Origin: Pocillopora damicornis
Lineage: Eukaryota
DNA: 64,000 nucleotides
Reading direction: 5' to 3'
Assembly: GCF_003704095.1 (NCBI RefSeq)
Contig: NW_020846824.1
Coordinates: forward strand, 248,001 to 312,000
The position numbers and the translations under genes are program-made. The notes below the pieces were generated by a model, which saw only the letters and a program-made list of their open reading frames with translations, made no database searches and was not told the origin of the DNA. Shown here one piece after another: positions 10,301-52,300 of this stretch. Numbering within the stretch: the stretch's first letter is position 1; each line of letters starts with the position of its first letter.

Positions 10301-10778
10301 TTGGTCTTTTGGGGTGTTGCTATGGGAAATAATCTCAATTGGCCAGTGTCCTTACCCGGGAATTCCAGCGCGACTGCTGATGAGGAAGCTTGTGATTGGT
10401 TATCGCATGCAGAAGCCCTCTCAGTGCTCCGATGACATGTACGAGGTTATGAGAGCCTGCTGGCAACTGGATGCGGGCGCAAGACCTACTTTTGCTGAGT
10501 TAGCAAAAATCTTGCACGAGTTTTTAGCGCGGACTGGACGTGCATACATCAACTTAGAAGGAGCAGATTCATATTTGGAGCAAATTCCGACAGCTTCTTT
10601 TGATTTGAGAAGCGAGTTTGAAAAAGATGAATCAGAAAGCAATGATTTTACCGAAGGTTCCGATGAGCTGGAGCGTGCGCAGATTGAAAACGATGTGGGA
10701 AGACACTCTGAAAGTTCTGCACATGCGTCATTTCAATTCCAGACTGAAACAATCCATTATATGATAACGAAGTTTTAA
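7305..10778 (+). CDS. LRR-EGF receptor tyrosine kinase, paralog 1
   Basis: Exons 7305-9078, 9393-9503 and 9778-10778; both introns are phase-1 GT-AG. Hydrophobic N-terminus, ~9 LRRs, LRRCT (NPLECTCDMLWMKEWL), Cys-rich/EGF modules, cbEGF (DIDECAQAH..CINTEGSYRC), TM (FSVLVFVVLIVALGCCI). Kinase motifs GEGAFG, VAVK, HRDLAARN, DFGLAR and LPVKWMAPE are intact. Confidence 0.92.
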
Positions 10779-12001
10779 AAATAACGGAGAAGCTAAAACT
10801 ACATTTATCGATAGTGTTAAAAAAAACTCAATGTAGATGTTATTTGGCATGTCAATTACAAATTCTTATTAAGAAGAAAACATTCTAAAATTACATAAAG
10901 AAATTCATGAGGAATTTCGGTAAAACATTTTCGAACTGATCCGCTGACAAAGCGCAATGACTTTGAACGAGAAGATTCAAAGGTCACAGGCCTGTGAAGG
11001 GAAAACAGGAAGAATTTGAATGACTTACAAGTTTTGGTTTGTGACAAGTTTGTTCAGAAAACGACAATCACATCTTATGCTTCGTTTTAAACATTTTTCA
11101 AATTTATGTTTTTCAAAAAGACTTTTAGAGAGGTGAACACAGTTTGCAGTACTTCAGAATGTTTTTGAAAAACAGATGATGTCTTAATGGGTTTACCGGG
11201 TATCATGCTTTGGTTATCAAAATTTACCAATGGAACATGTAATGATATGTATAAATAATACATAATTTTAGTTTATTGAACACGATGAAAGCCGAAAGGT
11301 AAACTGTGTAAATATGGAAAAACAATAAGATAGGTCTTTAGACGTTGAGGGGAGCATATATATGAAAGAGCACACAGGAGCCTTCCACTCCTCGACTTTG
11401 CTTCGCGCGAGATGGAGTCTTTCACATCTTTCTCCTCAGACTGCTGTACTGTTCTTTATTTTATTTTAGCAATTTTTTTTCTATAAGACCAGCTAGAAGC
11501 CCATGAACGGGACACTAAGTCGAAACCCATCGAGATCGCCGTCTAGGTAAATAAAAAACTAAAACTATTGATTGATGATAAATACTTCTTTTATTGCCAT
11601 GGCACATTTAACGCACGTGTATTAGTAAGATCCATGATTCAAGTTTGTCTCTTTATGCGTATTTTCCGTTTCTAGAGGCTCTGGACTTTCATCGTTTAAA
11701 ATCAAATTATTTTTAAATCGAATTCAATATTCATGTTATACAGCAAGATATTATAATCTCTTGGTTTCAGCTATTCACAAATGCACAACAAATGCTCCAT
11801 ACTTCGCAAACAAAATCTGGGACAGGAATTTGAAACAAGGGCGAGTAAGGTAAATTAAAAAAGAAAACGAGAGCTCGCCGAACTGTTATTATAGGTTTCT
11901 AAAGTATGCAACAATGCAAGTGTTATTTCACATTAATCTTATACATTAATAACACTTTCGCTTATGTTTTTAACATCCAACTTGTTTTGATGAAACAGAA
12001 A

Positions 12002-15000
12002 TTAATCAGAGGTCTTCTGCTCATTAGTGTCGTCGCTAAACTCTACCCCAGACCCCATTTGTTCCTCACTGACAGTGATATTGACGTAAGACCTCGCCGA
12101 TTCGGACAGCATCTCCGACAAGGTGCCGCAAATTTCGGGGAATGTCGGTCTTTCTTCGGGATCCAAGCGCCAGCAGGTTTTCATCAATCCGTAGAGTTCG
12201 TCAGAGCAGTGAGCTGGCTTAGACATACGATAGCCGCATAGGAGTTTCGTTAGAAGAAGATTTACCGGAACACAGGGATACGGGGAAGCCCCGATGGTAA
12301 CAATCTCCCATAGGAGGACCCCAAAAGACCAGACATCCGAACGGGTAGTGTATATCTGATCTTGAATGGATTCGGGGGCCATCCATTTTATGGGGACACG
12401 CCCCACTCCAGTCTTAACGTACTGCCCATCGCCATAAACATCACGCGCAAGTCCAAAGTCTGCCACTTTCGCTTCATGTTCAGCGGTGAGGAGAACATTT
12501 CTAGCGGCAAGATCTCGATGGACAAATTTCTTCAGAGCAATGTGATTCATTCCTCGAGTACAGTCCAACGCAATCTTAAGAAGATCGCGTGAACTCAGCG
12601 TGGAGATGATATTCACGTAGGTCTCATCCGCTGGACGGCTGGAACGCAGGTAATCAAGTAAGTTTCCACCTGAAACATACTCGGTTATTATGTACAGCGG
12701 TCCTGGTGTGGTGCATGTGCCAATTAGGCTGACGACATGTGGGTGTTGTCCAATCTCTTTCATCATATCCATTTCCAGGAGTAGATCCTTGTAATCAAAG
12801 CGATCAGCGTGTTCTTTAATGGTTTTCACTGCAACCTTTATGGGGCCGTCATCTGTAACAGTAAAGGAAAAATTAAGACCCCAAACTTGTTTTTAACAGC
12901 AAATCACAGACACAGTGTGGCTGAGGCACACTCCAACCATCCCAACCTAGGTCGGGGAAAAATTTAAAATGAATATTTCCCCCATCACTTTTTCCTGTGC
13001 AGTCATCTCTACAGGGTCCAGTAGCATCAATAAATAAAAAAGTGTGGTCCGACATCAGAAGAAACCTTCTACTGCTAAGACAATAGCGTCCACAAAGGTA
13101 CCTTAGTGTCCGAATTCAGATATTACTGTCCAAAATTGGACACTAGTGTGTAAAATCAGACACGAGTTTCTACAAGCGGATAATCGGACACTATCATCCA
13201 AAATTGGTCACTAGTGTCTAATACTGGATAATTGAGCACAAGTGTCCAAAATCGTCACTATCATCCAAAATAGCACTCTAGCGCTTAAAATCGGACAATA
13301 ATGTTTAAAATCGGACACTAATGACAAAAAAATCGGACACTGGTGTCCAAAAATCGGACGCTTGTGTCTAAAATTGGACACCAGGGACCAAAATCGGACA
13401 TAAGTGTCTGAAATCGAACCGTAATTTCTTATGTGTTAGGCTTGTCCAAAATCGACATTAGTTTCCAAAGTCAAACTATGAGTTGGGTGCTTTTATATTC
13501 ACTATTGGTAGGCGTGTCTAGGCTTACCTGCCAAGTCATTTTGAAATCATTAAACATTTGTTGCCAGAGCGAGAACCCTAACAATTTTACAAAAAGCTAA
13601 CAAATAAACAACAAAGGGGCTTAATGCTTCCAGTCAAACAATTAATCTTTGACGGCCACCGCCAAACACAAGAACGTTAGTGTAAGCGCGAAGCAGCGTC
13701 AGTAGACAAACTTAGCACGTCTACTGATGAAAGTTAGAAAAACAGTCACAATCAGAAGACTCGTTGCGATAGCATACGCCATGCAAATAACTCTAGAGCT
13801 TGAATTTAGGTATTAAATAAGTATCAAATATAAAAAAAATCAGTAAAATAGTTTTTGACTTGATGCTCCACACCACTTGTGACATTTTTTTTTATCGTTT
13901 TCATTAGAAGCTGTAAAAACTTTGTTTTAGGCTTACGACACTCAATGGACATTCACTCCATGTACTCACCAGTCATAAGTGTACCCTCCAACACCAAACC
14001 AAACTGGCCTTCCCCGAGTTTTTGACCAGTTAGAAGACGGTCTCGCTCAATTTCCCATTCATCAGTGTGATCGACTGTACCGCTTGCGAACGAATGCAGA
14101 TTACCGCCTGAGGAGTAACAAAATATGAAAGACATAATTTAGGTCGGACTAGAACTATTATAAAAAAAAAAAGATTTACGATTGAGTCATTAAATAGGCC
14201 CATTATGCGTTTATGTTTGCGTTGCCACTATGAAGCTCTAATCAATGAGTTTGGCTCGTCGTCTAACATCAGACAATGCAAGTGTTTATATGAAATAAAA
14301 TTCGGCCATACTGATGCTTCCAAATAAACATTTATAAGTTACAGTCCTTTTCGATGTAACCACGTTCTTTCAATAAACAAATATGGTTACGAGTCGCGTG
14401 AATAAGAAGGCTCTACGAATTCCACCAGATACCAACGGATTGATTGCTTTACCTAACTCCAAATGATCTCTGTTTCCTCTGTGATCAGCTCCACCACTCT
14501 GAGTACGGGTTCTCATCTCAATCAAGTCCTCCAGTCCAGGGACATATTGTGGATTGCTTCCCCTTTTGGGCTTCTTCTTCCTTCGCATTAAGTAGACGAG
14601 TAACACTGCGATGATTATTAGCACAAATAAGCTCACTGCGAGCGCCACAACGATCACCAAGCTGTTTTGAAAACCTCCGTCGGAGTGGGAGTCTGCTGTC
14701 GGATGTGTTGTGAATAGGTTCTTCTCGCTGTAACTGCTTGTGTTAAAAAAAGAAATAGCACCTAGACAAAAACAAAAAAGACAGAAATCGTCATCAGCAT
14801 TGTTGCCATTACCATCATCATCATCATCATCACCATAATCACAGTGACTATTTTCCTAAAGAAACATTAACTATATAAAATTAAAATTATCACAGGGATC
14901 ACAACACTTAAAATCTCAGGACTAATCGATATACATACGCCTCAACAGGTCTATCAATCTGTACAGTAGAAAAGTGACAAGAGTGAGGGAAATCATCAAA

Positions 15001-34300: not shown

Positions 34301-37300
34301 AGGAGGGCAGGAGCCATAATGACAGTGATGACGCTGAAGGACAAACATAAAAAGACAACTTAACAAACCCATTTAATCACAACATCATTCTCGATCTAAA
34401 GTACATGTCGCAATTTAAAATCAAATTCTGATCAAATCGGTGACAGGATAGTACATTCGCTTTGTGCTTCCTGTTGCCATAACAACAGACATAAAGCAAC
34501 TACCGCTAATGCAAACATGTTTTACAACTGTTTTCATAGATAGATAGGTTTCTAAAACTTACTTTGCGTTTTGGGTGATGACAATCTGGAGGATGGCTGT
34601 AAGAGATATAATTTTTCTGTTACAATATAGTAAGAAATATTTCATCCCAATGTTACATCACAATTCAAAGAGAGGACAGAAATCGTAGCAATTTGAAAAT
34701 ATGTCTCTGGTGACTAGAAACATATGGGAATTAAGGCACACTTTCCCGAGGTCACACAATAGCAGGCAATGTAATTGACTATTATATACGTTGACAAAAG
34801 TAGGTAGTCCTCTGATCCTGGTAATAACCATCAAAACATGCAAATACATGAGGGGTTCCATTTAGCTTGGATTTTCATATTTTTATTAATGGACAAGCAT
34901 TGATGAAACAAAAACCTCAGAAAGAACACATATTAAGAGCCGCATCCTAACCTGCAAAATTCAGCACATTTAGGTGGCTTGGTAACTTTTTCACGTCCAC
35001 AGGGTACTGTAAGAATTGTAGAACCACAGAAACACTTCACATCTACCTGGAGGGGACATGGGTAACATGGTCCTACATATGAGAGAATATAGGAATAAAG
35101 AAATAAATAACTGTCCAATAAATCTTATACACTGACCAAAGTGTTAGGTCAACCACTGCAACAAAGACATACAAACATCAATTTGATACAATGCGCAATA
35201 CCTCTGTGACATTGTGATGGGCATTTGTGGTTCCTGCAGTTCAGATTTCGATTACAAGTTTGTTCACATGGAGGGCAACCTCCATCACAACACTGCAAAC
35301 AAATCATAGACATAAATGAATAAGTAGCATCAATTAATTAATGATGGTATTTTAAGTATGATTACAGACAGAATTGGACTACACAAAGTCCTGTCACCAA
35401 TTTATTAAAACTATGACAAAATTCGAGAGAGAAACAAGACATTTGTTACATGTTTGCGTTAGAAAAACAGTTAACTCTGAAAAATGCGAGTCAACAGTGC
35501 ACGCACAAGATGCGTTCAGTCCACTTATACGGGCACGACGTGTTAACTGCCCCTTTAACTGTCCTATTACTCTGTCCAATTACAAGCATGATACATACAC
35601 TGCCCTATTAGTGCCCATATCGGGCTGGTGATAACCAATCAAGCGTACCCTTTCCTATTTGTGCTCAAATCGGGCTGGTGATAAGTAATCACGTTTGAGA
35701 ATTTTGTTACAGTTTTGATTAGGAGCATACAATTTTAGCCATCAGGCTGCAGAAACATTTTTTGTTGCTTATAAAGTCAGTTTAACACCCCACCTTCCGT
35801 TTACATGGATGTCGTTCACACTGCCTCATCTTCAGACACTTAATGTCGCACAGAAACTCTTGGGAACACAAAACACTTTTCTCACGCTTGCCACAACGGC
35901 AAGTCTTGGTAACTAACCGTCGACAAACCCCACAGGACCCTGTATGACACTGCTGAGCACATTTATGTCTGCCACAAACCAATGGCTTGTCACAAGTGCC
36001 ACCACAGGTTGGAACATCTTCTGTGCAGGGTAGCAAAAGAGCTGAAAGAGACAACAGAGAGCTTCAGCATGTTAATGCCTTATTTAACTTTGAAGGAGAA
36101 TCATACATTTTCTCCCTTATTCACCATGCTGATATATATATAAAAAAATAAGTTTAAGGCTGTTTTCATCACACGTTTGGAATTTGGTGCTCACCAGGAC
36201 CAATTCTATTTTGTCAAAAAGTAAACCTTGTCCTCTTGGAAAATAAAATAAACAAAATTGACAAAAGCAAAATACTTACAAGTTTGTCCACAGGGACATT
36301 TTCTTTCTCCTGTTCTTGGGCATTCACCACACTTATCTGCATGGCACAGTCTTTCACATCTATGATGGCCACAGGACAACACTCTGTTACAAACCTGAAA
36401 GATTGCAGCAGTCACAAAAAGGTACAACTGCTAAAGTAAGCTGAAAAACTACTTGTAGCAAATTGTTAATAATAGCAATATTCAAATAAGATCCATTCTT
36501 GAGCTTTTTCACTTTTAACCTAATTATCAGTGAGACAAAACATCACCTGTTCACATTGCCAATCTGCACTTGCACAAGGTCTTTTATTTGTCATTTTACC
36601 ACACAGACAGCTCTGCACACTCTCTTTGGGGCATGGTAGACAGTCACCTACGATGTGAGGAGGAAAAACTTGTAATAGCAAGTTACAACAGATTTAGTCA
36701 ATTGAAATCAATTCCACAACTTTACAGTTCCAAATTTAAGGAATAAAGAAGAGAACATGCTATGTACTTGGCTAACAAACTGTTTCCTTACCAGCATGGC
36801 ATGGGGACTCACAGCTGTGCTGGCCACAAGAAAGTAACTTTCCACAAGGCTTTCCACACGACCAAGATTTAGCGCTGCAGCGCCTTACCACTGGTGCCTG
36901 AGATCCACAGTGACAGGATGCAAAGACAGTCTTTGGACATGGAGGACACGGACCTGTATATGCAACATGGAACAGCACTTTGAGTGAAGTGACCAATTTC
37001 CAACTTCTTGACACAACTTCAATGCATTATACAAAGAGCACATGAGGAGAAATGACAAACTTATCAGCTGGAGGGTGTCATAATTGACATAACACTAAAT
37101 TCTCATTTATTTTTCCATAAAAATCTGCTTAAAGCTGATGCTTCACCATTGCCTTTATTGAATTGACCATTTAATTCCACTGAAGGGATGGGCTCAATGG
37201 CTATATAGAAATAAGCCAGATGATTCATTCCGCTACAGATAATAAAGAATACCACTGCATATAGGGCTCTATTATCATACTGATATATCATTTTTCAAAA

Positions 37301-40300
37301 GATAATCTTGCAAAATGAAAGTAAAGAGCATTCTTTGTCAATCCTCTAACTTATACACTATTTTAGGTGAAATGATTAACTGATCTGTACTGCACCTGGA
37401 TGACAAAGAAGAAGGCATTCATGTCCACACTCAGGCTTGAGAGGTCTGCTACAAGATTGGCCACAAGAGTGTGGTGTCAACCAGGGGTCAAAAGATGGGT
37501 TGACCTGAAATTATACCATCCCCTTACCTATAATTATGCGACTTTACTCTAAAAATAATGCTACTCTGCACCACATGGATTTTACAAAATGCTGTAGGCC
37601 ATCTATCAAACTTTCAGCTATGCCTCTGCAGCATTATTCAAGGGCAATATTCATCTTAAGTTAGTATTAAATGTTTCATAATTTTCTCAAATCATTGACA
37701 TAAAATTTAAATTTAAAATTAAATGGTAAATAATTATAATAACCACACATATGCCCTAGACAGTAATTAATGTGTTATTTGTGTTCCGATTCTCACTATT
37801 TTGATATAAATATTTAAGGTGATGCTTGAATTGTAGCTGTACAGTCTTATTATTTTTTTTTCTCCTCATTATAATCTATCTATAAATGAAACATTCCTTT
37901 AATTGAAAATAGAACTTATTTAAAGGAGCCACACTGAATAGCAAGTTTGCCTCTATCCTCCCCGTCTAACAAATGGCAGCATTCATGCAAGTGTGGCACT
38001 GAATGGAGGAAATACAGAACTCAACCTCACAAAAAGACTCTTGTCGAATTCAAAAATTTCCTGATTTAATTAGCTACCATACCTGTTTTTCACAAAAGCA
38101 ATAATATTTTGTGGGACATTCAGACTGCTTGAATTCACACCTGCATTTCGGGCTGAATTATTGGAACAAAAAGACAGCTGGTTATTAAATTACAATAAAA
38201 GAAAAATAAACTAGAACAAAAGTAAGAGTAACAAAATGGACCCAACTCATATTTCAGGCCTCAGAGTAAAAGTTCAGAAGTCCATTATTGTAAGCAAATC
38301 CATTATACATACCAATACCACGGCAACTCAGCAGGATTTAGAGTATCATCTGAGGTTAATTGAGTATAAGCAGCTCCATCCCTGGCCCACTTTTGAATGC
38401 ACTGCAGATGAAGAGTTGAGTAACACCGGCTGCAGTTCCATACCTTAAATGTTAAAAAAAAATCTATCAAAGGAGGAAGTTCTAAAGTATTTCTGAAGGA
38501 TTAAAAAACAAACATCCAGTTTTTGCCCATAAAAAGAACCTCTCATTTGCCCATTTTTTTCCCAGTTGAACTGTACATGATTAAGCAACGAAGGAGTTAT
38601 GGGGAGCAGCTCATAACTGACTGTTATCAGCAACATTTCTCCTATTGTATTTTCCATGGAAAAAATTGGCTTTAGATCGTTTTGAATAATGCTCTTTTAT
38701 TCAAGATGATTCAAGATTCTGGCGACTTGTAAACATAACGACAGAAAATATGGTATTGAGACCTGCATAAATTTATAGATCAGGGGATGTGTTTAGGTTT
38801 TCTTTATTTAATCTTTACAGTTTTTAGGAGTATAAAAACCTCGCCTAGTTAGAAAACCATTACGATTTTTCCCAGTTATTTTCGTTACCCATTTTTTGAA
38901 GCTACGAGCTTCTCGTTTAACATGCACAGATTGCGTATGCTCGAACTGACTCCTTAAATATTTATCTTGGACATTCTCTGATAAAATATCACAAATGAGT
39001 TAACATACAAATGAGTTGACACATAAATGAAAAATTTATTTAAGGTATATTCCAGTACATGTAAGAGGGAGACGAGGCCAATAGAGTCAAATACTTTCCT
39101 ATCAGTCTTTCCTCTATCTTGTCCGTCATCATGAATTTTATTGACCGAAAAACCCACGCTCATTGCGCACTCGACCCAGTCTCTCTACGTGTTCGGGCCC
39201 CGTGAGCTACTTTCCCAAAGATCATCTAAATAAACACTAAAATAATTTCAGGCAAGGCAGTACATTAAATCCGTCTCTTCATTTCCAACTATTCAGCTTG
39301 TCTCGCTGTCATACAACAGTCTTTAGATGCTACCTCCTTCATGAACGTTATATCAAGAGTAAGTTCTAACTCCTCATGTTGTTTTGGTAAGAACAGATCC
39401 TGAATAGGACTGTAAAAAGATCAGAGAAGAAAGATCGCATTGGAAAATATGCTAATAAGAAACCTGCGTAGGCATGTTCTCCTTGTCACGTGTTAGATGA
39501 CAGATGATTGGTCAATGAATCTGACAGATCGATTGTGCACAAAGAGTTGGCGTTAGTTTATTTTTTAGTCTTGGTAACACACGATAGTGTTTGAATGCTT
39601 CCTCCGTCTCGAACAGTCCTTTAACGCCACGCAGGAAAGTAACGATTCTGTAACGATCTCTACCAACTTATAGGTATGTTTTTAGCTTTTACGCAATCTA
39701 ATAATATCCTACTTGGAACAAAAATCGCCCTCGATCTCTGTAAATATTACATGTCGCATTCCAGCCGAGATAGAGTGCTTAGGGAAGATCGAAAACGTTT
39801 CGGTGCACTTCCGTATTGATGGGAGTTAAATTCAAATGTAGACCCTAAAAGGAAAAGAATCTCAACTTCTAACGTGCTCTTGTCTGACGCAAAATCGTAG
39901 AAAAAAATCACCACAAACCAAAAAACCGAAAAAAAAAATTCGATCAAAACCGAAAACCGCATGCAAAACTGTCAAAACCGCCACATTTTCATGGGGGTGA
40001 CAAGTGGAGCATAACTACACTAACTTCGTTACAGTATTTATGAATGCCATGGACTTAGAATTCGTATAGGCGTTATTTCAGCTGCTCTCTCGAGGACCTC
40101 GAGCGTGGTCTCTGCGCACTCAGGAGCTGGTAATGGAGCCCAGTTTAATTAAGGAAATTCGCACAAAAGTCCTCCGTAGGATTGCAATTTTGCAGTCACA
40201 AAAAGCGATAGCTCTAGAAAGTTCCTTCGAAAATTCTAAATCTAACATTTCTATTTGCGAACTAAGACCTGAAAGTTTAAAGATTCTATTGGAATGTTGA

Positions 40301-43300
40301 ATCAATCAGTCACGGGTAGCCTGTAACTTGGTCACCGACTTCGAGGTGGCGTTGATAAAGAAACTCTGGTAATGTTCCATGCTTAGCCATTGTTGTTTCT
40401 TGTCGCACTGTCCTTCGTCTTACTGCTACACCATATTCGTCATTCAAGGCGCGTGAACCCCTACGGATGGTCAAAGCCTTGGGCGTCATTCGAGACGCGT
40501 GAACCTCCCAGGGATTAGCCCATGTGTAGCCTCGTACCCTCCCCTCCCCCTCCCCCCCAGGAGAAACGGAGGCGAAGTTCCCTAGCTTCCAATTCACCTC
40601 AGCGGGGGAAGGGTATGGCTACACGTTGGCTACCTTGGGATCACTGCGATATTTCAATTGGTTTGTCACGCATTCCTCTCAGCGTTTAGCGGCTATTCGA
40701 GATCAGTGGAGGCGCATAATTGCCGCTCAGATCGAAGAGAAACCGGAACTCAAATAGGTCACATAGGAAAAATCGAAAACCGCATCGGATATCAAATCCG
40801 AAAACCAGTTACTATTTTTCGCGGAAACCGAAAACCATATGCTAACAACAGAAAATCCGCAAACCGCAATGAACACCAAAACGGAAAAACTGAAGTTTTT
40901 TGGCACAAGAACCGTAAAACCGATCTAAAAAATAGCCAAAACCGCAAAACCGAAAATCCCAATCCCAGCCTCTATACAAGTAATACGGGTTAAAACATAA
41001 TTTCACGCAAACACAGTGACGCGTTGAATAATAATTACATTTCTTAAGCTACCCGATCTCCATTACTTGTGCCGAGAAAACCATCCGCTTTAAAACGCAG
41101 AGGAGTGATTCTCAGCGAACAAAAGGCTAGTATCGAAAATCTCTCGGTGCTATCGGTCTCACAAGAACTGCTATCGCTTGCTTTTCATGAAACAAAATTT
41201 ATGTTCCGTGCGAAAACTATAACGGACAATTGAGGGAATCAAAGACGCTTTGGTGTATTACCGCCTGAGTTAACTCGAACCTGAGAGCGAAAGCAGAACG
41301 GTATATTTACCTTCAACCATGCCAGAGTCTGACCACACCGGGGTTTTCAGAAAAACATTAAACAGCTTGCTCAAGCAAATCCATACGAATCCATACGGAC
41401 CGCTTTCTTCGGTTAGTTTGACAAGAAGAAAACAGTGTGACCATTTTGATTACATTACTCGGTCGGAAAGCAGCGAAACTGGTCGTAGTTTGTAAACCAA
41501 TGTCCAACAACGTCTATTATTCATACAAAAGCAAAGAAAATCGTAATCGACAAAATCGATTAATCTTTGATCAGCGCGTATTGTCTTTCGATCAACCAGC
41601 AATTTTTTCACTATGGGCTGCTTCCGTTCTACCCACCGCTGGCAAAATGCGGACAGTTGGTAAGATCGTTACCGTACTGCTTACGATTGTGTTGCACAGG
41701 ATGAAGTATAGTTTAAGTGTTTTCGGTTCCTCCTTTCCCCATGGTTTCGAGTAGTATAGGAGTTAGCGCCGCGGGACCAGTTTTGTGAAAACTTGTCTCG
41801 AAACCAAGTCAACTCAGTATTTTCTTAGCGAAAATTATGGCCGCCATCTTTGATTTTAATCATGTTATTTCAGAACAGAAGATACAAAATAGAACTTATC
41901 AGTTAGACCAGTTCATAATTTGTGTATCTCTCGATACATATTCCGTATACGTTGATATTATTACATGTTGATCATTTTTTCCTGTGATTTGAATTTTATA
42001 AAATGGATTAAAGTTTGCGTGTTAAATTTCGAGAGGATCTTTATTCACGGGTCTTAAATTTCCCCTTTTTTTTTACAATGGCAAAAAACGAGAAATTAAA
42101 GACCCGCGAAATCAAGAACGAATAAGGTGTAAGTATGATAAGGCAGGCATTTGTTATTCTTGTTCATTTATCACGCTCTTTTACATTTCACTTCTTCTTA
42201 AAAATCTGATTCTTTGATAAATTTAGACCGAGGAAGCATGGCCAAAGCATTGATTGGAATCCTTCTTGACGTCTCCGATTCCATGCGTCGTAACGTGGGA
42301 AGTGGTGTTGATGAAGATGGAGGACCGTGGGCTCTTTCGATATTTGAAGTTATTGACAACCTGATCAAACACGACGTCTCTCCTGATAACTCTGTATTTG
42401 CTTTGGCCTTTGGAGCTAGAGGTGGTGACCAATTATTAGATATCTTGACGTGTCTTCAGTCTTCCAAATGTGATCAGAAAGCCACAGATGATCAGGTAGA
42501 GAAGATTTTCCGAATACTGGAGGGAGCCGGTGCAAAATACATCCGCAAATGGGCAAGGAGGGAAGTCGTCCAAGGAGTATTTACACGTCACAAGGCTTCA
42601 TTATTTCTGGAAAAAGCTGAGTCGGACGAAGATTTTCCAAAAACTTTTGTCCAAATGTGTCTACCACCAGAATGCCGAGTTTTTCCTGGAGGAGCCTTAG
42701 CGGCACAGCTTTTAACCGGAGCCGAACACGCGTGTGCAAGTGTGTGGTCATCCATACGAGAAGCTACAGAGGAAGACATCCAAGGAGCACTGACAAAGGC
42801 CCAACCGTTGTTGGTCAGTTTCAAACCTCGCATCTTCAATGTTAAAGAAGCTTCAGATGTATTACATGGATACATCGATGAAGGAGAACTCTCGAAAGAA
42901 AGGAGCCGAGAATTATTAGAGAAAGTAGAACCCTACATCTACGGCGCGACTCCCTTGTATCAAGCAATCCGTACGGCGACTAAGTGTTTTGAAAAACACG
43001 CGTCTACGTTTCAAAGTCACAAAAAGCTGTTGTTTGTCTTATCAGACGGTGATCCCACGGATGGAGGAGAGAACGATTCGGCGGCAATAAAGAAAGTGGC
43101 CACAAGATTAGAGAACGCAGGTGTGACCGTAGTAGGCTGCTTTGTCACTCAATCCAAAACGATTCAGCCCAGACAAATGTTCAGTAAGATGAACACAAAC
43201 TGGGACTCAGGTTCAAAGTTCCTGTTCTCACTGAGCTCAACAATAACCACGCAGTCGATACCGCGCACCATGTTTGTTAAACGTGATTGGTCCATTGACT

Positions 43301-46300
43301 TTGAAAACAATGAAACACGTTTGTTCCTGCAGGTCAATCATCCTGACCACTTGCGAGACGCTTGCGACCTCGCTCGAAACGTCGTCTGTTCTCAGGAGGC
43401 GTTATCCGATTTGCTTGCAGACGTCGACCTCGATGTTTACATAAACCAGTCAGTAAGAGATTATGAAGCACAAGAAAAGCAAGAAGGACACNNNNNNNNN
43501 NNNNNNNNNNNNNNNNNNNNNNNNNNNNNNNNNNNNNNNNNNNNNNNNNNNNNNNNNNNNNNNNNNNNNNNNNNNNNNNNNNNNNNNNNNNTTAATCCAT
43601 ACGGACCGCTTTCTTCGGTTAGATTGACAAGAAGAATACAGTGTGGCCACTTTGAATACATCACTCGGCCGAAAAGGAGCGAAACTGGTCGTGGTTTGTA
43701 AACCAATTTCCATTATCTATCGCGTTCCAGCCGCGATACGGAGTATTCAGGAAAAATCGAATACGCTTTAGTGCACTTCCGTATTGATAGAAGTCAAATT
43801 CAAATATAGACCTTAAAAGCGAAAGAATCTTTACTTCTAACATGATTTTGTCTGACGAGCGGTTCTTGAACAGCGCAACTCAGATTTCTAGGCCAAAAGG
43901 CACCAGAAAAGGAAATTATAGAGTGTGATTACATTAAAAGATGTCAATAGCGTACTTTGAGAATCTTCAGCACGACCCGATGAAAAAAGGATTCAATCCA
44001 CTTCCCAAGTCTTTGGAAGGGAGCTGATGGTAATAATACAGGCTAAAACATAAATTCATGCAGACATAGCTGGTGACTCGTCAAATGATTACATTTCCTC
44101 AACTACCCGACCTCCAGTACTGAGAAAACCATCCACTTTGAAACGCAGGGGATTGATTTTTAGCGAACAAAAGGCTAGTATAGAAAATCTCGAGGTGCTA
44201 TCGGTCTAACAAGAACTGCCATCGCTTGCTTTTCATGAAGCTAGATTTATTTTTTGTGTGAATTTTATCTTTCCGCAGTTAAAGTAATGGCCATTCGTAA
44301 CTTATATCTGCTGGGCCTTCCGAGAAATTTGTTTCATTTGCAATTTAATTATATTCCCGGAAAAAAAGGCGATCAGGTGTTTCAAATCATACATTCTATG
44401 AACCCAGCCAATTGAAAACCAGGACGAACTAGCATGACGTCCGCATGGTCCGCATGGTTCTGCACAGACTATGGTTTTGTACAATGACTATTATTAACGT
44501 GGAAAAACGAAAAATATCGATCTACTGTCCCCTATAATAGAATACTAAGCAGACACAGATCCTGATAAACAGTTTGTGAAAAAGACAGTGCGCCAGAATT
44601 CGTTAAGTCGCTTATATAGTTACAATTAAAGAAAAAAAATATTTCCAAGTTCGATTCTAAGCAATCTCATACTAAATCTCCGCGGGGTTGGTCAATAATC
44701 ACGTGATAGTGTAATCAATGCGAAAGTTTAGTTCACTGGTATTTTTGTAAACCAGTATGTCAAGGCCGATTCTTATAATTATAATTGCAGACAAAGGAAA
44801 CATGCCCGCATTAATTGGAATCCTACTTGATGTCTCCGGATCCATGGAGCGTAACATTGGAAGTGGTATTGATGAAGACGGAGAACCGTGGGCTCGTTCG
44901 ATCTTTGAGGTCATTGACAACCTTATCAAATACGATGTTTCCGCTGACAACCACGTTTTTGCTGTTGGCTTCGGGGCTAACGAAGGTGAGCAAATATTCG
45001 ACATCCTGGGAACCCTTCAACGTATTCACCTTCATAACCGAGCTTTCGATAGAAATGACAAGCCCGTCACACGCGGCCACTTAAATGAAATTTTTAAAGT
45101 ACTGGAGAAGGCCGGTGCCCGTTACATCCGCAAATGGGCAGACGTGGAAGTCGCCAGAAAAGTAGTACCGGATTACACAGCTGATTTGTTACTAAGAAAA
45201 TGTCAGTCTGACCAGTCATTTGCACGTAAATTCGTCATGGAGTTTCTACCACCAGCTTGCCGTGATTGGCATACAGAGGATAATCCACTTCTAGGCCTCG
45301 TAGAAACAGTGGCTACCTCTGTCGTGACGACGTTTAAAAGAGCTACAACAGAAGACGTCAAAGATGTAATTGACAAGGCTGCACCACATTTGATGAAGAG
45401 AAGTGTAGGAGAAGATTCCATTTTCAATGTGCGCAAAGCCTCAGATATTTTACATGGATGTTTCGATGAAGAGGAACTCTCAAAGGAAAGGAGTCGAGAA
45501 TTATTACGAAGAATCGAGCCCTACATCTACGGTGGAACGCCTTTGTATGAGTCAATTGAAAGGGCCACAAACCTTATGAGAACCAGTGAGGTTTCAAGTC
45601 ATGAAAAGGTCCTATTTGTCCTATCAGACGGAAAGCCTGGAGACGGAGCTATTGATGATCACTGGAGAAAATCAGAAGCCGTCTCAGGATTTAAGAATGC
45701 CGAGGTGAACGTAGTGAGCTGCTTTGTCACTGACTCCACAACGATTGAGCCCAGACGACTGTACAGTGAGATGAAACCTGACTGGCATGAGGGTGCACAG
45801 TTCCTGTTCTCACTGAGCTCAATATTAACCACGCAGTCGATACCACGCACCATGTTTGTTAAACGTGATTGGTCCATTGAGGTTAAAAACAATGAAACAC
45901 GTTTGTTCCTGCAGGTCAATCATCCCGACCACCTGCGAGACGCTTGCGACCTGGCTCGAGATGTCGTCTGTTCTCAAGAGGTGTTGTCCGATTTGCTTGC
46001 AGACGTCGACCTCGATNNNNNNNNNNNNNNNNNNNNNNNNNNNNNNNNNNNNNNNNNNNNNNNNNNNNNNNNNNNNNNNNNNNNNNNNNNNNNNNNNNNN
46101 NNNNNNNNNNNNNNNNTTTCGATAGAAATGACAAGCCCGTCACACGCGGCCACTTAAATGAAATTTTTAATATACTGGAGAAGGCCGGGGCCCGTTACAT
46201 CCGCAAATGGGCAGACGTGGAAGTCGCCAGAAGCGTAATACCGGATTACACAGCTGATTTGTTACTAAGAAAATTTCAGTCTGACCAGTCATTTGCNNNN

Positions 46301-49300
46301 NNNNNNNNNNNNNNNNNNNNNNNNNNNNNNNNNNNNNNNNNNNNNNNNNNNNNNNNNNNNNNNNNNNNNNNNNNNNNNNNNNNNNNNNNNNNNNNNNNNN
46401 NNNNNNNNNNNNNNNNNNNNNNNNNNNNNNNNNNNNNNNNNNNNNNNNNNNNNNNNNNNNNNNNNNNNNNNNNNNNNNNNNNNNNNNNNNNNNNNNNNNN
46501 NNNNNNNNNNNNNNGCCCTACATCTACGGTGGAACGCCTTTGTATGAGTCAATTCGAAGGGCCACAGTACTTATGAGATCCAATGAGGTTTCATGTCATA
46601 AAAAGGTCCTATTTGTTCTTTCAGACGGAGAGCCTAGAGACGGAGCTATTGATGATTTAGTGAAAAAAAACGAAGCCGTCTCAAATTTGACGGATGCCGA
46701 GGTGAACGTAGTGGGCTGCTTTGTCACTGACTCCACAACGATNNNNNNNNNNNNNNNNNNNNNNNNNNNNNNNNNNNNNNNNNNNNNNNNNNNNNNNNNN
46801 NNNNNNNNNNNNNNNNNNNNNNNNNNNNNNNNNNNNNNNNNNNNNNNNNNNNNNNNNNNNNNNNNNNNNNNNNNNNNNNNNNNNNNNNNNNNNNNNNNNN
46901 NNNNNNNNNNNNNNNNNNNNNNNNNNNNNNNNNNNNNNNNNNNNNNNNNNNNNNNNNNNNNNNNNNNNNNNNNNNNNNNNNNNNNNNNNNNNNNNNNNNN
47001 NNNNNNNNNNNNNNNNNNNNNNNNNNNNNNNNNNNNNNNNNNNNNNNNNNNNNNNNNNNNNNNNNNNNNNNNNNNNNNNNNNNNNNNNNNNNNNNNNNNN
47101 NNNNNNNNNNNNNNNNNNNNNNNNNNNNNNNNNNNNNTTGCTCGAAAGGTCGTCTGTTCTCAGGAGGCGTTATCCGATTTGCTTGCAGACGTTGACCTCG
47201 ATGTGTACATAAACCAGTCAGTAAGAGATTATGAAGCACAAGCAAAGCAAGAAGGACAGACCTGCTTTGCACATGCATCAGCTACAGTGCTTCATTTGAC
47301 TATGAAGCGAATTCATGGCCGCCAGGGCAAAATCCCAGATTTCGAAGAATTGAAAAATGAAATGATCGGCCATTTTGGAAAAGAAGCTGCCGTTATCAAA
47401 ACAGTGCTCGAAAAAATGTGCAACAAGTACCGTTTGCGTTACAAGCAAGTTGACCTCAAGGGTGCCATGGAAGCAGTCGCTTCAAGCCGACCGGTGGTTG
47501 CAACATTTGGGCTTACCCTCAATGAGTGGGGTAGGTTTTATGAGTTCTTCGAAACTGACGGAAAAGGTATTTTGACAAAAAGGGTGATCGATATAACAGC
47601 CCGTCCTGAAAATCCCAAAGGGTTTGGCCATGCAGTGGTTTTAACCAGTTTCAACAGTGAATATTTGCGACTGTTGAATTCCAAGGGATCCGACTGGGCA
47701 GACAACGGCTTTTTTAAAGTGCAGAACGCAGACGTTCTTGGATTTAAGTTTTATGATGTTCACTGGGAAGTAGAAGATCTGAACGAAAAAGAAAAAACCT
47801 CTTTCAAGGAACTTGGATCCAAGCGTGCCAAATGGCTGATGGAAACTTTGCCGAGTCTTCAGCGAGATGATTACACCGTGAATTGTCCCAGATGCCAGCA
47901 AGATTCACCGGTCAAGAAGTTCACTGGCAATTTGTCAGGTGCTAAGTGTCCCAAATGTAACAAGGAATTCAATCTGAAAAATGTCCCCAAAGGAAACATT
48001 TTGGCTCTCAACATTTATCTCACTGCTTCAAGCACATAAATTCTCCTCGTTATCCTTTTTACTCTGATAGAGAAATGTTTAGCCTTCCTTTTTATTATAG
48101 GGAAGATATCACAACCTCCATAACAGGATAACCTGAACAAAGGCACCGAATGAAAACGATTTAATATCAGTTTCAGTTAATTTATAAGTGGTATTCTGCT
48201 TACTCAAACTAGTTGACAGGTATGATTACAGTAATCGTCATTTTGGCATAAACAACCGACCCTAGCGGTCCTAAAAAGAAAAATCTTCAAAGATTTAGAT
48301 CAAGTTTAGTTTTGCAGAGAGAAATAACCAAGGACGGTTTACAAAAAGCAAGGAAATTTCCCTACTTTTCATAGGCAAAACAACTTATCCATGCAGAAAA
48401 AAAAACAAAAAAAACAAAAACAAAAAAAACAAAAACAAAAAAAACAAAAACCAAAAAAACAGCAAATGTCATATAGAAAGAAATAGGCACAATGCAGGCA
48501 TTAAACATTAGATTTGACTTGAGAAAACTAGTGAAGTAAGATGAACAGGTAGAACAGGTTGAAAGAAGCTTTTTTTGAACTGGGCTAGTATTTTCTAGGG
48601 AATTTGTATCGATCTGGGCAAACTTTTACACTTGCCAGTTCCAGTGAGAAAAGAGGTTAGCTTTAATATGAAACGAATATAGGACATTTCGCATCAAAGA
48701 CTTTTCGCACAAGTCTTTTCCCACAAGTTTTGGACCGTTCGCACAATTCTTAATAGTTATTTCGCACAGTAATTATTGGTGAGAGACCTCAATGTAAAAG
48801 GCATTCTAATTTATACTGATAAGATATTTCACCGTCACATGTCACTTTCAATAAGATCCAACGGCGAGAGCTTAGATATTTCTTTATGTAACAACTCCGA
48901 CTAGATGGAAACGCTTGTGAACACGATCAGTATTCTTGAAGAGAGGAACAAATCTTTCTCTCTATGAAAATGTAAAGAACTCCCCATTCGAACGATTACT
49001 TCTATTACTTTTCCTTTGTTAAACGAAAAACTTTTTAGTTTTGACAGTACATCATCCACTACAAACATACGACCCACACTAACGACGCCATGTTGATTTT
49101 GAAAGTAATTGTCACCAGTCCTCCTTCCTCTGAAGTCAAAGTAAAAACCTGCAAACTGTTTCACTTTTTATTAAAAAGTACTAAAGACCTATTTTGTCTA
49201 AATATATAAAGTTCAAGTAATGTCAATTATGGAATTTTAATTGCAACAATTAATGATACATTCATTTGCTATCTAGTAACAATTAAACCGGAGGCACTGT

Positions 49301-52300
49301 CAAAATTAAACATTTCTTTAGTTATCTATACGAATCGATTTCGTCATTATCAAAACGATCCCAAAGCTTAATTATCTTTGACTGCATGTCACGATAGCGT
49401 TTTCGTTGAATTCTTGGGAGTTTAGCTTGACTAACAAGTTCCACCTGAAGCTTTGCTAGCATTGCTTCACTGTGCTGAAATTTCACTGGCAGATAAAATT
49501 GCAGCTGATGGCGGTAAGAGGCTCTTTGGTTCATCCTATTGTGCCAACCCTCAATGTAGCTGTTGGTACCGATATTCCCATGTTTTTCTCACGTATTAAA
49601 AAAGGTTTTGTAGGGCGGCGTTCTGGTCAGCCTGTTGTACGAGCCGGTTAAACATGTCCTCAACGTCGTCTGAGGGCCTGAAGTCCCAAATATTGGATCT
49701 GATGAGGTAATAAAATACAAGTAAGAACAGATTTCNNNNNNNNNNNNNNNNNNNNNNNNNNNNNNNNNNNNNNNNNNNNNNNNNNNNNNNNNNNNNNNNN
49801 NNNNNNNNNNNNNNNNNNNNNNNNNNNNNNNNNNNTAAATTTTCCTCGTTATCCATTTCCCGCTGATAAAGAAATGTTTAGCCCTTCCTATTTTATAGGG
49901 AAGATATCACAACCTCTATTACAAGATAACCTGAACAAAGGCGCCGAATGAAGACGATTTAATATCAGTTTCGGTTAATTTACAAGTGGTATCCTGCTTG
50001 TTCAAACTGGTTGATAGGTACGATTACAACAATTTTCATTTCGGCATAAACAACCGACACTAACGAATCTAAAAAGAAAAATCTTCAAAGATTTAGATCA
50101 AGTTTAGTTCAACAGAGAGAAATAACCAAGGACGGTTTATGAAAAATTAGGATATTTCCCTACTTTAAAAAGGCTAAACAACCTTTCCATGCACAAAAAG
50201 AAAACGGCAAATGCAGGCATTATACGTTAGATTTGACTTGAGAAAACTAGCGAAGTAAGATGAACAGGTAGAATATGTTGAAAGAATGTTTTTTTGAACT
50301 GGGCTAGTATTTTCTAGGAATTTGTATCGAACTGAGCAAACTTTTACACTTGCCAGTTCTACTGAAAAGAGGTTAGCTTGAATATGAAACAACATAATTT
50401 ATGTCACATTTAGATAAATATATGTTATTTGCCGGCTGGGAGGTCCGTATGGTGAAAAACTGTGACCGAGGTCTTGAAAATGCTGCCCTCGGCCTACGGC
50501 CTCGGGCAGTATTTTCAAGACCTCGGTCACAGTTTTTCACCATACGGACCTCCCAGCCGGCAAATAACATATATATATATCCTCCTAGGTTCGGCAGCAT
50601 TCAAAAATTGGTGACAAATTTTTCCATGGGCTTTTTCCCTTTTCTTTTTACTAGGAATACACATTGTAAAACGCTTCATCTGTTTCAAGTTGTATATGTA
50701 TAGTAAACCGATAAATGCCCGGAATCGAGACATCGTGGAGAAAAGGCTGACTCTGCCAAAAGAATTACCTGTTTGTTCCTTTCTGCTTTTAGCTCAGTAC
50801 CAAGTCGATAAGGGTGATACTTAAATACAATTATTCACGTTTTTTTGCGCAAAGAAGTTTCACTATTTTTGTGCATTTTTAGAAGAAGCTAAGCCCCTTG
50901 AGCTTGTATGCAATTCACCTGTGATTTTCTTCAAACCAGAGCAGACTATGTATAAGATCAGTTATGACCAAAACACCATTATGGAAAGAACTATCAATCC
51001 CACCAGTCTCTAACTAACAAATTTGCAGGTGATTCTGGAAACATTATAGTAAAACATAAGGTAAGGCTGCAGAAATAATCCCCAACTCATTCAGGAGGGA
51101 GTCTCTACAAACATTGATCTTGTTTCTTGAGCTTCAAGGCAGTTTTATTAAAGGAGAAAAGGTATTTCAGCAAGCCAGCCCAAACTAAAATATCTAAAAT
51201 TTATTGCTCAAAGAAATCAAACAATTTCTTAGGAAGATTCATAATTCCTTAAAGTCCTCTTGCATTGTTAGGGGCCAATTGCCTAAGCCAATTCTTTTTT
51301 CTTTTCTTGTGTAGCAGTTTATTTAACCATGCATGAAAGTGTGCTTATTCCAGGAAATTCACATGTGAATGGGACAGAATTTGACAGCACTTTAACACCT
51401 ATAGGCTAATACCACTCTGACACCCTCTGTAACCCTCCCTTCTTGGTCAAAATCAAGTGCATTGAAAAATATTGCAGACTCAAGTCTCTCCTAAGGACCA
51501 TCAGTGCTATCACCATGTGACACTCATTTAAAGAAAATGAATAAAAAGCTACGCTTTTGCAAGTCTAGGATTTGTGTTCACTTTGAAGCTAGATGTAGAA
51601 CAAAAATGTTATTTATCCCAGGGGATATCACATTGCCAGTGCATGTTAGAATTGCTAAATTGTCAGCTGTCTACTTCATGCAGTGAGGCACCTTCTCCCT
51701 GGTTTTGAGAACCACGAAAACTTTATCTTGAATGAGCACTACATACTCTTGACTAATTTGGATGGAAACAATTGGAAGACAGAAGGCAGGATTATTTAAT
51801 TGCACTTTGGGAATTTAAGGGTTAAATGGCAGAATCCAGTGAGAATACATGATAAAAGATATAAACAATATTCAACTTATACTCACAGCATCAACATGTT
51901 TGATGGAAGCAATGCATATTAAACACACACTTGAGCCAGGTTTACAGGAATCAATCAAGTACTGGGCAGTTTTGCCCAAGTCTGCCTCATTGTCTACAGG
52001 GGAGAAATGCAGCAAATTCCCTGATAAGTACAGATAAAACCTTGTAAATGAACACAAATAGCCCCCTAATATTTACTGAATTAGTTTCAGAAAAAAAAAA
52101 TTATAGCGATTGTGGATATCTGGTTTGCTAAGATCTTGGGACATATGAAGTAACCAAAGTTTGGAGCCTGACTGTCATGTTTACCAAATGAAAACACCTG
52201 CGCTTAAGTTTAGTAGCATAATCAGTTGAAGAGCCTTTCGATGACATTCATGGCACTAGCAAAATTGGCTCAGGAATGACTTAGCCTGCCCAAGCAATCC

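Follow-up and report, generated by a model that had tools for sequence, protein, structure and literature searches.

The described proteins closest to the subject of this work are the papain-like cysteine peptidases of MEROPS family C1, in particular subfamily C1A (papain, cathepsins B, L, K, C and X, and Der p 1/Der f 1). Here we analyse a cluster of genes from the coral Pocillopora damicornis whose products are predicted to combine a domain of the von Willebrand factor A type (vWA), a papain-fold peptidase and a zinc ribbon in a single chain. The cluster lies antisense within the second intron of NFXL1, in a window of 64,000 nucleotides (NCBI RefSeq assembly GCF_003704095.1, contig NW_020846824.1, positions 248,001 to 312,000; all coordinates below are those of the window). 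The peptidase domain of this family shares with the C1A enzymes the two-lobed fold (Z 14-15.6, root-mean-square deviation (rmsd) ~3 Å over ~175 residues), the order Gln, Cys, His, Asn, and the GHAV and NSWG..W.(D/E)NG(F/Y) motifs around the His and the Asn. On the other hand, it lacks the signal peptide, the I29 propeptide and the conserved disulfide cysteines of C1A, it is shorter (~180 versus ~215 residues) and obtains only marginal Pfam scores, it has a vWA domain in front of it and a zinc ribbon after it, and in pocilloporid copies its Asn is often an Asp. Bleomycin hydrolase and PepC (subfamily C1B) are likewise cytosolic enzymes of the C1 type without a prodomain, but their structural match is much weaker (Z 9.5 for Gal6), and they contain neither a vWA domain nor a zinc ribbon. 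The C1B enzymes are self-compartmentalising hexamers.

Outside the papain family, a comparable layout is known from the prokaryotic MoxR-vWA ternary conflict systems, in which a vWA domain, a helical linker and a C-terminal effector, often a peptidase, are found in one polypeptide (Kaur et al. 2020, PMC7159879; 2021, PMC8195603). The likeness is one of architecture only: in both cases the effector follows the vWA domain, and both are linked to Death-like adaptor domains. However, no MoxR ATPase or third component is evident at the coral locus, where the only neighbours in the window are exons of NFXL1 (MoxR elsewhere in the genome was not searched for), and there is no sequence match in PADLOC. 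Moreover, the coral family is eukaryotic and monocistronic, and its helical segment is an insert inside the vWA domain. Caspases and the MALT1 paracaspase offer another parallel, as one relative of our family (P0151) carries a Death domain in front of its cysteine protease module; yet they belong to clan CD, whereas the peptidase described here is of clan CA, and the Pocillopora genes have no Death domain. Finally, the CLCA proteins are extracellular and contain a self-cleaving zinc metalloprotease together with a vWA domain bearing a metal ion-dependent adhesion site (MIDAS) in one chain. They resemble our family in this pairing of a protease with a MIDAS vWA domain, but differ in their extracellular location, in the class of the protease and in the opposite order of the domains. 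The family described here joins known domains in an unstudied combination.

Domain architecture and transcription

Gene A is followed in the intron by a second gene, gene 2, of which the window probably contains two versions, B and C, all of them broken by assembly gaps. The visible pieces were searched separately and the pieces of version C were never joined; the full-length fold was taken from a natural relative, P0036, which matches what is visible of A at 99.5% identity. The locus harbours a real, transcribed cluster of a vWA-papain-zinc ribbon family. We think it probable, with some reserve, that the explanation as a whole, with the mechanism and role considered below, is right, and very probable that the architecture of the proteins (~680-700 residues) is correctly described and that they are catalytically competent, their activity being predicted.

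The N-terminal part is confirmed, by profile searches and modelling, as a vWA domain of the Rossmann-like alpha/beta fold with an intact predicted MIDAS metal site. The visible part of gene A passes the cut-off of the Pfam VWA family (PF00092; 27.6 bits, cut-off 23.8), version B stays just under it (21.1 bits; VWA/VWA_2 21-23 bits, under the cut-offs), and many relatives score 25-32 bits. A family profile comprising 55 relatives at 23-92% identity matches vWA domains in the PDB at E 6.5e-9, and a Foldseek search with the AlphaFold2 model of P0036 (predicted local distance difference test (pLDDT) 82, predicted template modelling score (pTM) 0.71) also retrieved the vWA domain of BatB (E 1.7e-4). 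In this model the first strands of the vWA domain are followed, after beta-3, by helices at residues 69-233, then by the rest of the vWA domain, a linker, the peptidase, a long helix, the ribbon and a final helix; a stretch of the linker (residues 386-408) is acidic and conserved, and is modelled with low confidence. The MIDAS (DxSxS, Thr, Asp) is complete in A and B, and among the 55 relatives its residues are 84-100% conserved (D and the first S 51/51 each, the second S 48/51, T 46/55, the final D 50/55). The original prediction, which placed at the N-terminus a vWA domain with all MIDAS residues, interrupted by ~150 helical residues, is therefore upheld by Pfam (for A), the PDB profile search, Foldseek, conservation and the model, in which the insert measures ~165 residues. 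A search of the ESM Atlas with the helical insert alone returned no usable match.

The only protease half visible in the window is that of version C, and all structural comparisons point to the papain family. Its AlphaFold2 model (47140-48036) has a pLDDT of 87.7, and when compared with representatives by VIA-align its top 20 matches were all C1 peptidases (Z 11.7-15.6), led by Der f 1 (Z 15.6, rmsd 3.1 over 174 residues) and including cathepsins B, C and X at Z 14-15, while the other clan CA families (staphopain, C39, UfSP, ATG4) did not exceed Z 11. Foldseek with the full-length model of P0036 likewise placed C1A peptidases first (E 5.6e-5, probability 1.00). The family profile matches mexicain and papain in the PDB at E 4.5e-6 to 1.6e-5; the alignment covers the His and Asn motifs and pairs these two residues with papain H159 and N175. 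The Pfam model Peptidase_C1 (PF00112, cut-off 20.7) is passed by relatives at 24-33 bits (P0066, P0096, P0201; close relatives 28.6 and 24.5), but not by the piece from the window. The predicted catalytic residues, which occupy positions 37 (Gln), 42 (Cys), 164 (His) and 180 (Asn) of the piece from the window, are conserved throughout the set of relatives, with a single exception at the Asn (Q 55/55, C 55/55, H 55/55, N 54/55). At this third catalytic position pocilloporid relatives (P0001-P0120) vary: the motif was found in 99 of them, with Asp in 83 and Asn in 16, and the version C piece in the window has Asn. In our judgement the Asp is compatible with clan CA catalysis.

The C-terminal cysteines form the motif CPxC-x17-CPxC, conserved in 54-55 of the 55 relatives, and are modelled as four short strands with two CPxC knuckles (pLDDT ~90), i.e. 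as a predicted zinc ribbon with putative zinc binding. As the chain begins directly with the beta-1 strand of the vWA domain and its DxSxS motif (residues 4-15), the Pfam scan found no I29 prodomain and the nucleophile is the only conserved cysteine within the peptidase domain, the protein is predicted to be a cytosolic, prodomain-less and disulfide-free C1-like enzyme, with none of the signal peptide, propeptide and conserved disulfides typical of C1A. In these respects too the original prediction, which had named a papain fold with Gln/Cys/His/Asn in clan CA order, a CxxC..CxxC ribbon, and the lack of a signal peptide and of a cathepsin-type prodomain, agrees with our results.

The cluster is transcribed from the + strand, with spliced exons in the 5' untranslated region (5'UTR) and a coding sequence (CDS) contained in a single exon. 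The protease piece was found in 20 sequencing runs from 11 studies, nine recorded as RNA. Contigs of poly(A) RNA mapped over 42100-48090 cover the coding parts at a depth of 6-30, so that the absence of transcripts, once considered as an objection to the genes, does not apply, and the intergenic region 43500-44700 is empty in all four runs. In one library of raw reads every read was first-mate-on-minus, which fits RNA of the + strand rather than pre-mRNA of NFXL1. The RNA contigs stop at 42225 and 44789, just past AG acceptors, with 200-255 foreign letters in front. For gene A, 255 such letters precede 42225, and the last 30 of them match a segment upstream that is directly followed by a GT at 41951 (Table 1). 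The window lacks the 5' exon of gene 2, which on the related scaffold L007 lies ~1.7 kb upstream, in the stretch that is hidden here by the gap 43492-43591. An upstream ATG at 44757 falls outside the observed transcripts, and version B is taken to start at 44802. The genes had been described as devoid of introns, which is true of the CDS but not of the 5'UTR, where gene A has an intron and gene 2 likewise. A further RNA joint, 45951->47138, was rejected as an intron: its two ends are equivalent sites in B and C, and the distal end falls on the base immediately behind a gap.

Number of genes in the cluster

The original prediction counted at least three paralogs, and three distinct sequence versions are indeed present. 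Nonetheless, we propose that each haplotype probably carries a tandem pair of genes, of which A is conserved and gene 2 highly polymorphic, and that version B with the 3' flank of type 2 and version C with the flank of type 1 are two haplotypes of gene 2 that were scaffolded in series. Judging from the sequences compared, this is moderately likely. The comparison relies on Tara metagenome scaffolds of closely related Pocillopora (flanks 98-99% identical), which were used for gene order, identity of visible parts and distances only. We favour alleles because these scaffolds carry one gene where the window shows both: in L007, L011 and L012 a single gene occupies the interval that runs from gene A, or from the A-gene 2 spacer, to the next NFXL1 exons. 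The gene of L011 and L012 is of the B type (97% identical to B) and is followed by a flank of type 2 at 98.8% identity; in L013, which ends ~0.9 kb past its gene 2, it is of the C type (the three C pieces match it at 100, 98 and 97%) with a flank of type 1; and in L007 it is a mosaic of both types. The natural protein P0003 is 100, 96 and 99% identical in amino acids to the three pieces of C and 87% to B; the C pieces can therefore come from one gene. The protease half of B is absent from the entire 234-Mb assembly, a search of which confined the family to this single locus, and the flank of type 2 in the window has no gene in front of it, only a gap.

The contrary view, that B and C are true paralogs and that the haploid array contains at least three genes (A, B and C), possibly with a fourth hidden before 49836, remains a serious contender, although we would put it at somewhat less than an even chance. 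Where they overlap, B and C differ (87-96% nucleotide identity), they stand in series on one scaffold, and two distinct 3' flanks are present in the window. Copy number also varies elsewhere, with three copies or remnants in L010 and two A-type genes in other contigs. Against it stands the fact that each of the scaffolds that extend to the next NFXL1 exons holds one gene, which across the scaffolds is either B-type with flank 2, C-type with flank 1 or a mosaic, and that a geneless flank 2 together with a missing protease half of B is the pattern expected of two haplotypes placed in series.

Family distribution, function and origin

An exhaustive search assigned to the family at least 664 clusters, formed at 50% identity, that score E <= 1e-3, among them 127 with E <= 1e-30; most clusters are of 650-750 residues and of the same layout, with the protease at the C-terminal end. 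The named members come from corals (Stylophora, Acropora, Montipora), from other invertebrates, namely an annelid (Owenia), an echinoderm (Holothuria), a tardigrade (Paramacrobiotus) and a flatworm (Macrostomum), and from protists (the ciliate Tetrahymena and the rhizarian Leptophrys); the nearest cluster in the ESM Atlas is eukaryotic, mostly from Ascomycota, and contains VWA and Peptidase_C1. There are no vertebrate, insect or nematode proteins among the named matches, although absence from these groups was not directly tested, and a limited scan of prokaryotic genomes (bacteria and archaea), with P0186 as the only query protein, revealed no relative, which is weak evidence for absence. The family is thus widespread but patchy in eukaryotes, and it is uncharacterised: all named members are annotated as 'uncharacterized' or 'hypothetical', and in the literature we found no paper on the family or its locus names (a preprint on protein knots that mentions both 'papain-like' and 'VWA' is unrelated). 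The statement of the original prediction that this is not a characterised animal family is thereby substantiated, and the survey of taxonomic spread that it called for gave relatives in corals, other invertebrates, protists and fungi. In one member from Macrostomum lignano (P0128, 3511 residues) the family module lies inside a very large predicted protein annotated as 'ribonuclease H', which probably arose when the gene model was fused with an adjacent transposable element.

As to the mechanism, we suggest that the protein would act as an active cytosolic endopeptidase, in which the MIDAS face of the vWA domain may engage an acidic residue, either from a partner or from the conserved acidic linker of the same chain. 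Such binding could recruit the substrate or gate the peptidase cleft, and the zinc ribbon might serve as a second docking surface. Extra domains are rare across the family, but two relatives provide clues: P0151 has an N-terminal Death domain (E 8e-17) and was seen in two sequencing runs (L014:49-2754, L015:51-2756), and P0232 has a C-terminal WD40 propeller. The two Pocillopora genes evolve differently. Gene A is conserved within the genus, with a ratio of non-synonymous to synonymous substitution rates (dN/dS) of 0.25-0.31. In gene 2 the vWA part shows a dN/dS of 1.1-1.8 between versions, and the protease half, at 0.54-0.69, is under purifying selection (the larger three comparisons give p 0.002-0.003). 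At non-synonymous sites the divergence between L007 and L013 is about seven times as great in gene 2 as in gene A. The L007 allele of gene 2 agrees with L013 in its vWA half, with 0 synonymous differences, and with L011 in its protease half, where dS is 0.011; alleles of this mosaic kind indicate recombination or gene conversion within the gene.

The Death and WD40 fusions of the relatives and the fast-evolving, mosaic vWA part of gene 2 suggest a role as an effector in cell-death, immune or self/non-self signalling, which we regard as a tentative possibility. It is tempting to go further and to consider the family as an unrecognised class of eukaryotic cytosolic, ligand-gated cysteine proteases, i.e. 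effectors similar to caspases and paracaspases but with a different fold, in which the hyper-polymorphic, recombining gene 2 would carry a vWA sensor under balancing or diversifying selection; in this full form the idea appears unlikely, if attractive. Several results count against the explanation given here. The dN/dS of the gene 2 vWA part is never significantly above 1 (p 0.14-0.87), and relaxed constraint fits as well as positive selection. A database search for further Death-domain fusions returned only P0151, a single cluster. The defence models of PADLOC do not match the family, and NCBIfam gave only sub-threshold zinc-binding matches and no defence model. The peptidase of version C scores 13.3 bits with Peptidase_C1, under the cut-off, and in two runs of raw reads expression was very low (9-16 reads). 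The earlier notion of a sensor-effector module of innate immunity thus gains from the one Death-domain fusion, the one WD40 fusion and the polymorphic, mosaic gene 2, and loses from the missing match to known defence models and from the Death fusion being a singleton; it is plausible.

Alternatively, the protein could be a regulatory or housekeeping cytosolic protease without any immune or conflict role, engaged for example in the limited processing of a specific partner in a metal-dependent complex. Intracellular vWA proteins are commonly complex-assembly modules, the core architecture and all functional residues have been kept from ciliates to corals, gene A is conserved, and no similarity to known defence modules is apparent. 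Against such a role speak the patchy phyletic distribution noted above, the lineage-specific tandem copies, the hyper-variable gene 2 and the Death and WD40 fusions, and we consider it less likely than not.

With respect to origin, the available data argue for vertical descent accompanied by losses, and not for a recent transfer. A quick maximum-likelihood tree, built from the protease and zinc ribbon, places all labelled metazoans except the tardigrade in one starred clade (98 in the Shimodaira-Hasegawa-like approximate likelihood ratio test), outside of which the ciliate and the rhizarian are placed, and the Pocillopora genes group with those of Stylophora and of another coral. This other coral's gene, which is 57% identical, lies head-to-head upstream of NFXL1 exon 1 and not in intron 2 (L009:3476-5493 and 10001-12073); therefore, the linkage to NFXL1 predates the nesting. 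It is on the metazoan clade and this shared linkage that the proposal of vertical descent is based. The original prediction had called the intron-poor structure compatible with a horizontal or retro origin. A recent entry of the cluster into corals by horizontal transfer or retroposition would agree with the single-exon CDS and with the presence of the family in protists and fungi, but the metazoan clade, the shared linkage, the spliceosomal introns of the 5'UTR and the lack of a relative in the limited bacterial scan speak against it, and we judge it improbable. Improbable to a still greater degree is the idea that the copies are decaying pseudogenes or non-catalytic pseudo-enzymes: A and B do look truncated, the window copy is under the Pfam cut-off and the dN/dS of the gene 2 vWA part is ~1, but the truncations coincide with assembly gaps, no visible coding piece contains an internal stop codon, relatives of nearly the same sequence are complete, no catalytic residue has been lost, transcription and splicing are observed, and the dN/dS of the protease half is ~0.6.

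Locus map and implications

The nesting of the cluster antisense in intron 2 of NFXL1 is borne out by the GT..AG borders of the intron and by the two exons on either side of it, which encode the halves of a RING/PHD finger (Table 1); an NF-X1 zinc finger is encoded further downstream (36775-37014). The same nesting occurs on independent Pocillopora scaffolds, and the identical arrangement in L007 therefore rules out a mis-scaffolded location, which had been named as the result that would speak against the array.

Table 1. Features of the host intron and the gene cluster (window coordinates)
Feature	Position	Strand	Remarks
NFXL1 intron 2 (host intron)	38444-51886, 13,443 bp	-	GT at 51886/85, AG at 38445/44
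NFXL1 exon directly downstream of host intron, second half of RING/PHD finger	38306..38443	-	
NFXL1 exon directly upstream of host intron, first half of RING/PHD finger	51887..52054	-	5' boundary unmapped
Gene A, non-coding first exon, 3' end	41921..41950	+	RNA contig match, 2 mismatches over 30 letters; exon start further upstream unmapped
Gene A, 5'UTR intron	41951..42224, 274 bp	+	GT..AG; RNA contig
Gene A, visible CDS (residues 1-418: vWA, helical insert, start of linker)	42238..43491	+	418 codons, no stop
Gene A, MIDAS codons	D11 42268-70, S13 42274-76, S15 42280-82, T238 42949-51, D270 43045-47	+	
Assembly gap	43492..43591	.	100 N placeholder, not continuous; left, A codon 418; right, non-coding
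Gene 2 version B, coding exon	44789..46016	+	AG acceptor 44787-88; CDS from ATG 44802; 405 codons visible (44802-46016), vWA part only
Assembly gap	46017..46116	.	100 N, not continuous; left, B codon 405; right restarts at equivalent of B residue 96
Version C piece 1, inside vWA helical insert	46118..46294	+	Equals B residues 96-156; nucleotide identity 96% to B, 100% to L007 and L013
Assembly gap	46297-46514	.	218 N, between pieces colinear with one gene; flanks 294 nt apart in L013
Version C piece 2, vWA core with MIDAS Thr and Asp motifs	46516..46740	+	Nucleotide identity 87% to B, 98% to L007 and L013
Assembly gap	46743-47137	.	395 N, between pieces colinear with one gene; flanks 206 nt apart in L013
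Version C piece 3: linker, papain-fold peptidase, long helix, zinc ribbon, C-terminal helix, stop	47140..48039	+	Stop 48037-48039
Version C piece 3, catalytic codons (predicted)	Q 47248-50, C 47263-65, H 47629-31, N 47677-79	+	
Version C piece 3, zinc-ligand codons (predicted)	C 47884-86, 47893-95, 47947-49, 47956-58	+	
3' flank type 1, downstream of version C	48037..48674	+	Repeat families D1, D12-D14; continuous with C-type gene in L013
Assembly gap	49736-49835	.	100 N; second copy of stop codon and 3' flank directly after
3' flank type 2, from stop codon directly after gap 49736-49835	49836..50417	+	98.8% to L011 and L012, flank of B-type genes there

The gaps conceal much of the cluster. 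The first of them, whose flanks are separated by 3147 bp in L007, hides the protease half and the 3' flank of gene A as well as the 5'UTR exon of gene 2, and its right flank is 91% identical to 41388-41506, upstream of gene A. The estimated lengths of the two gaps within version C are wrong when compared with the distances in L013. The copy of the 3' flank that follows the gap 49736-49835 is 82-92% identical to 48037-48653; the copy either belongs to a gene concealed by the gap or is the flank of the other haplotype. The ~1.06 kb past the flank of type 1 (48675-49735) have no counterpart in L007, L011 and L012, while in L013 they continue to at least 48998; they may be an insertion particular to the C-type haplotype. 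Short pieces of 39766-41506, upstream of gene A, are found again, rearranged, in the A-gene 2 spacer (43594-44262) at 81-91% identity, and may be shuffled remnants of duplications or repeats.

Two kinds of gene model at the locus had to be discarded. The open reading frames of 495, 466 and 499 residues that read through N are artefacts, because the gaps are not continuous or are wrongly sized. The NCBI model LOC113681283 (P0002, 698 residues, 44757-48039) cannot be accepted as a real gene either: it skips 46017-47137, i.e. the gaps and two fragments of C, and so joins the vWA domain of B to the protease of C.

For the annotation of the Pocillopora genome this means that LOC113681283 is a chimera across assembly gaps and that the copy number at the locus is unreliable. 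For the family as a whole, should the enzyme prove active and ligand-gated, the short list of intracellular signalling proteases would gain a new architecture. In the coral itself, gene 2 presents itself as a candidate marker of, or player in, immunity, symbiosis, and colony fusion or rejection.

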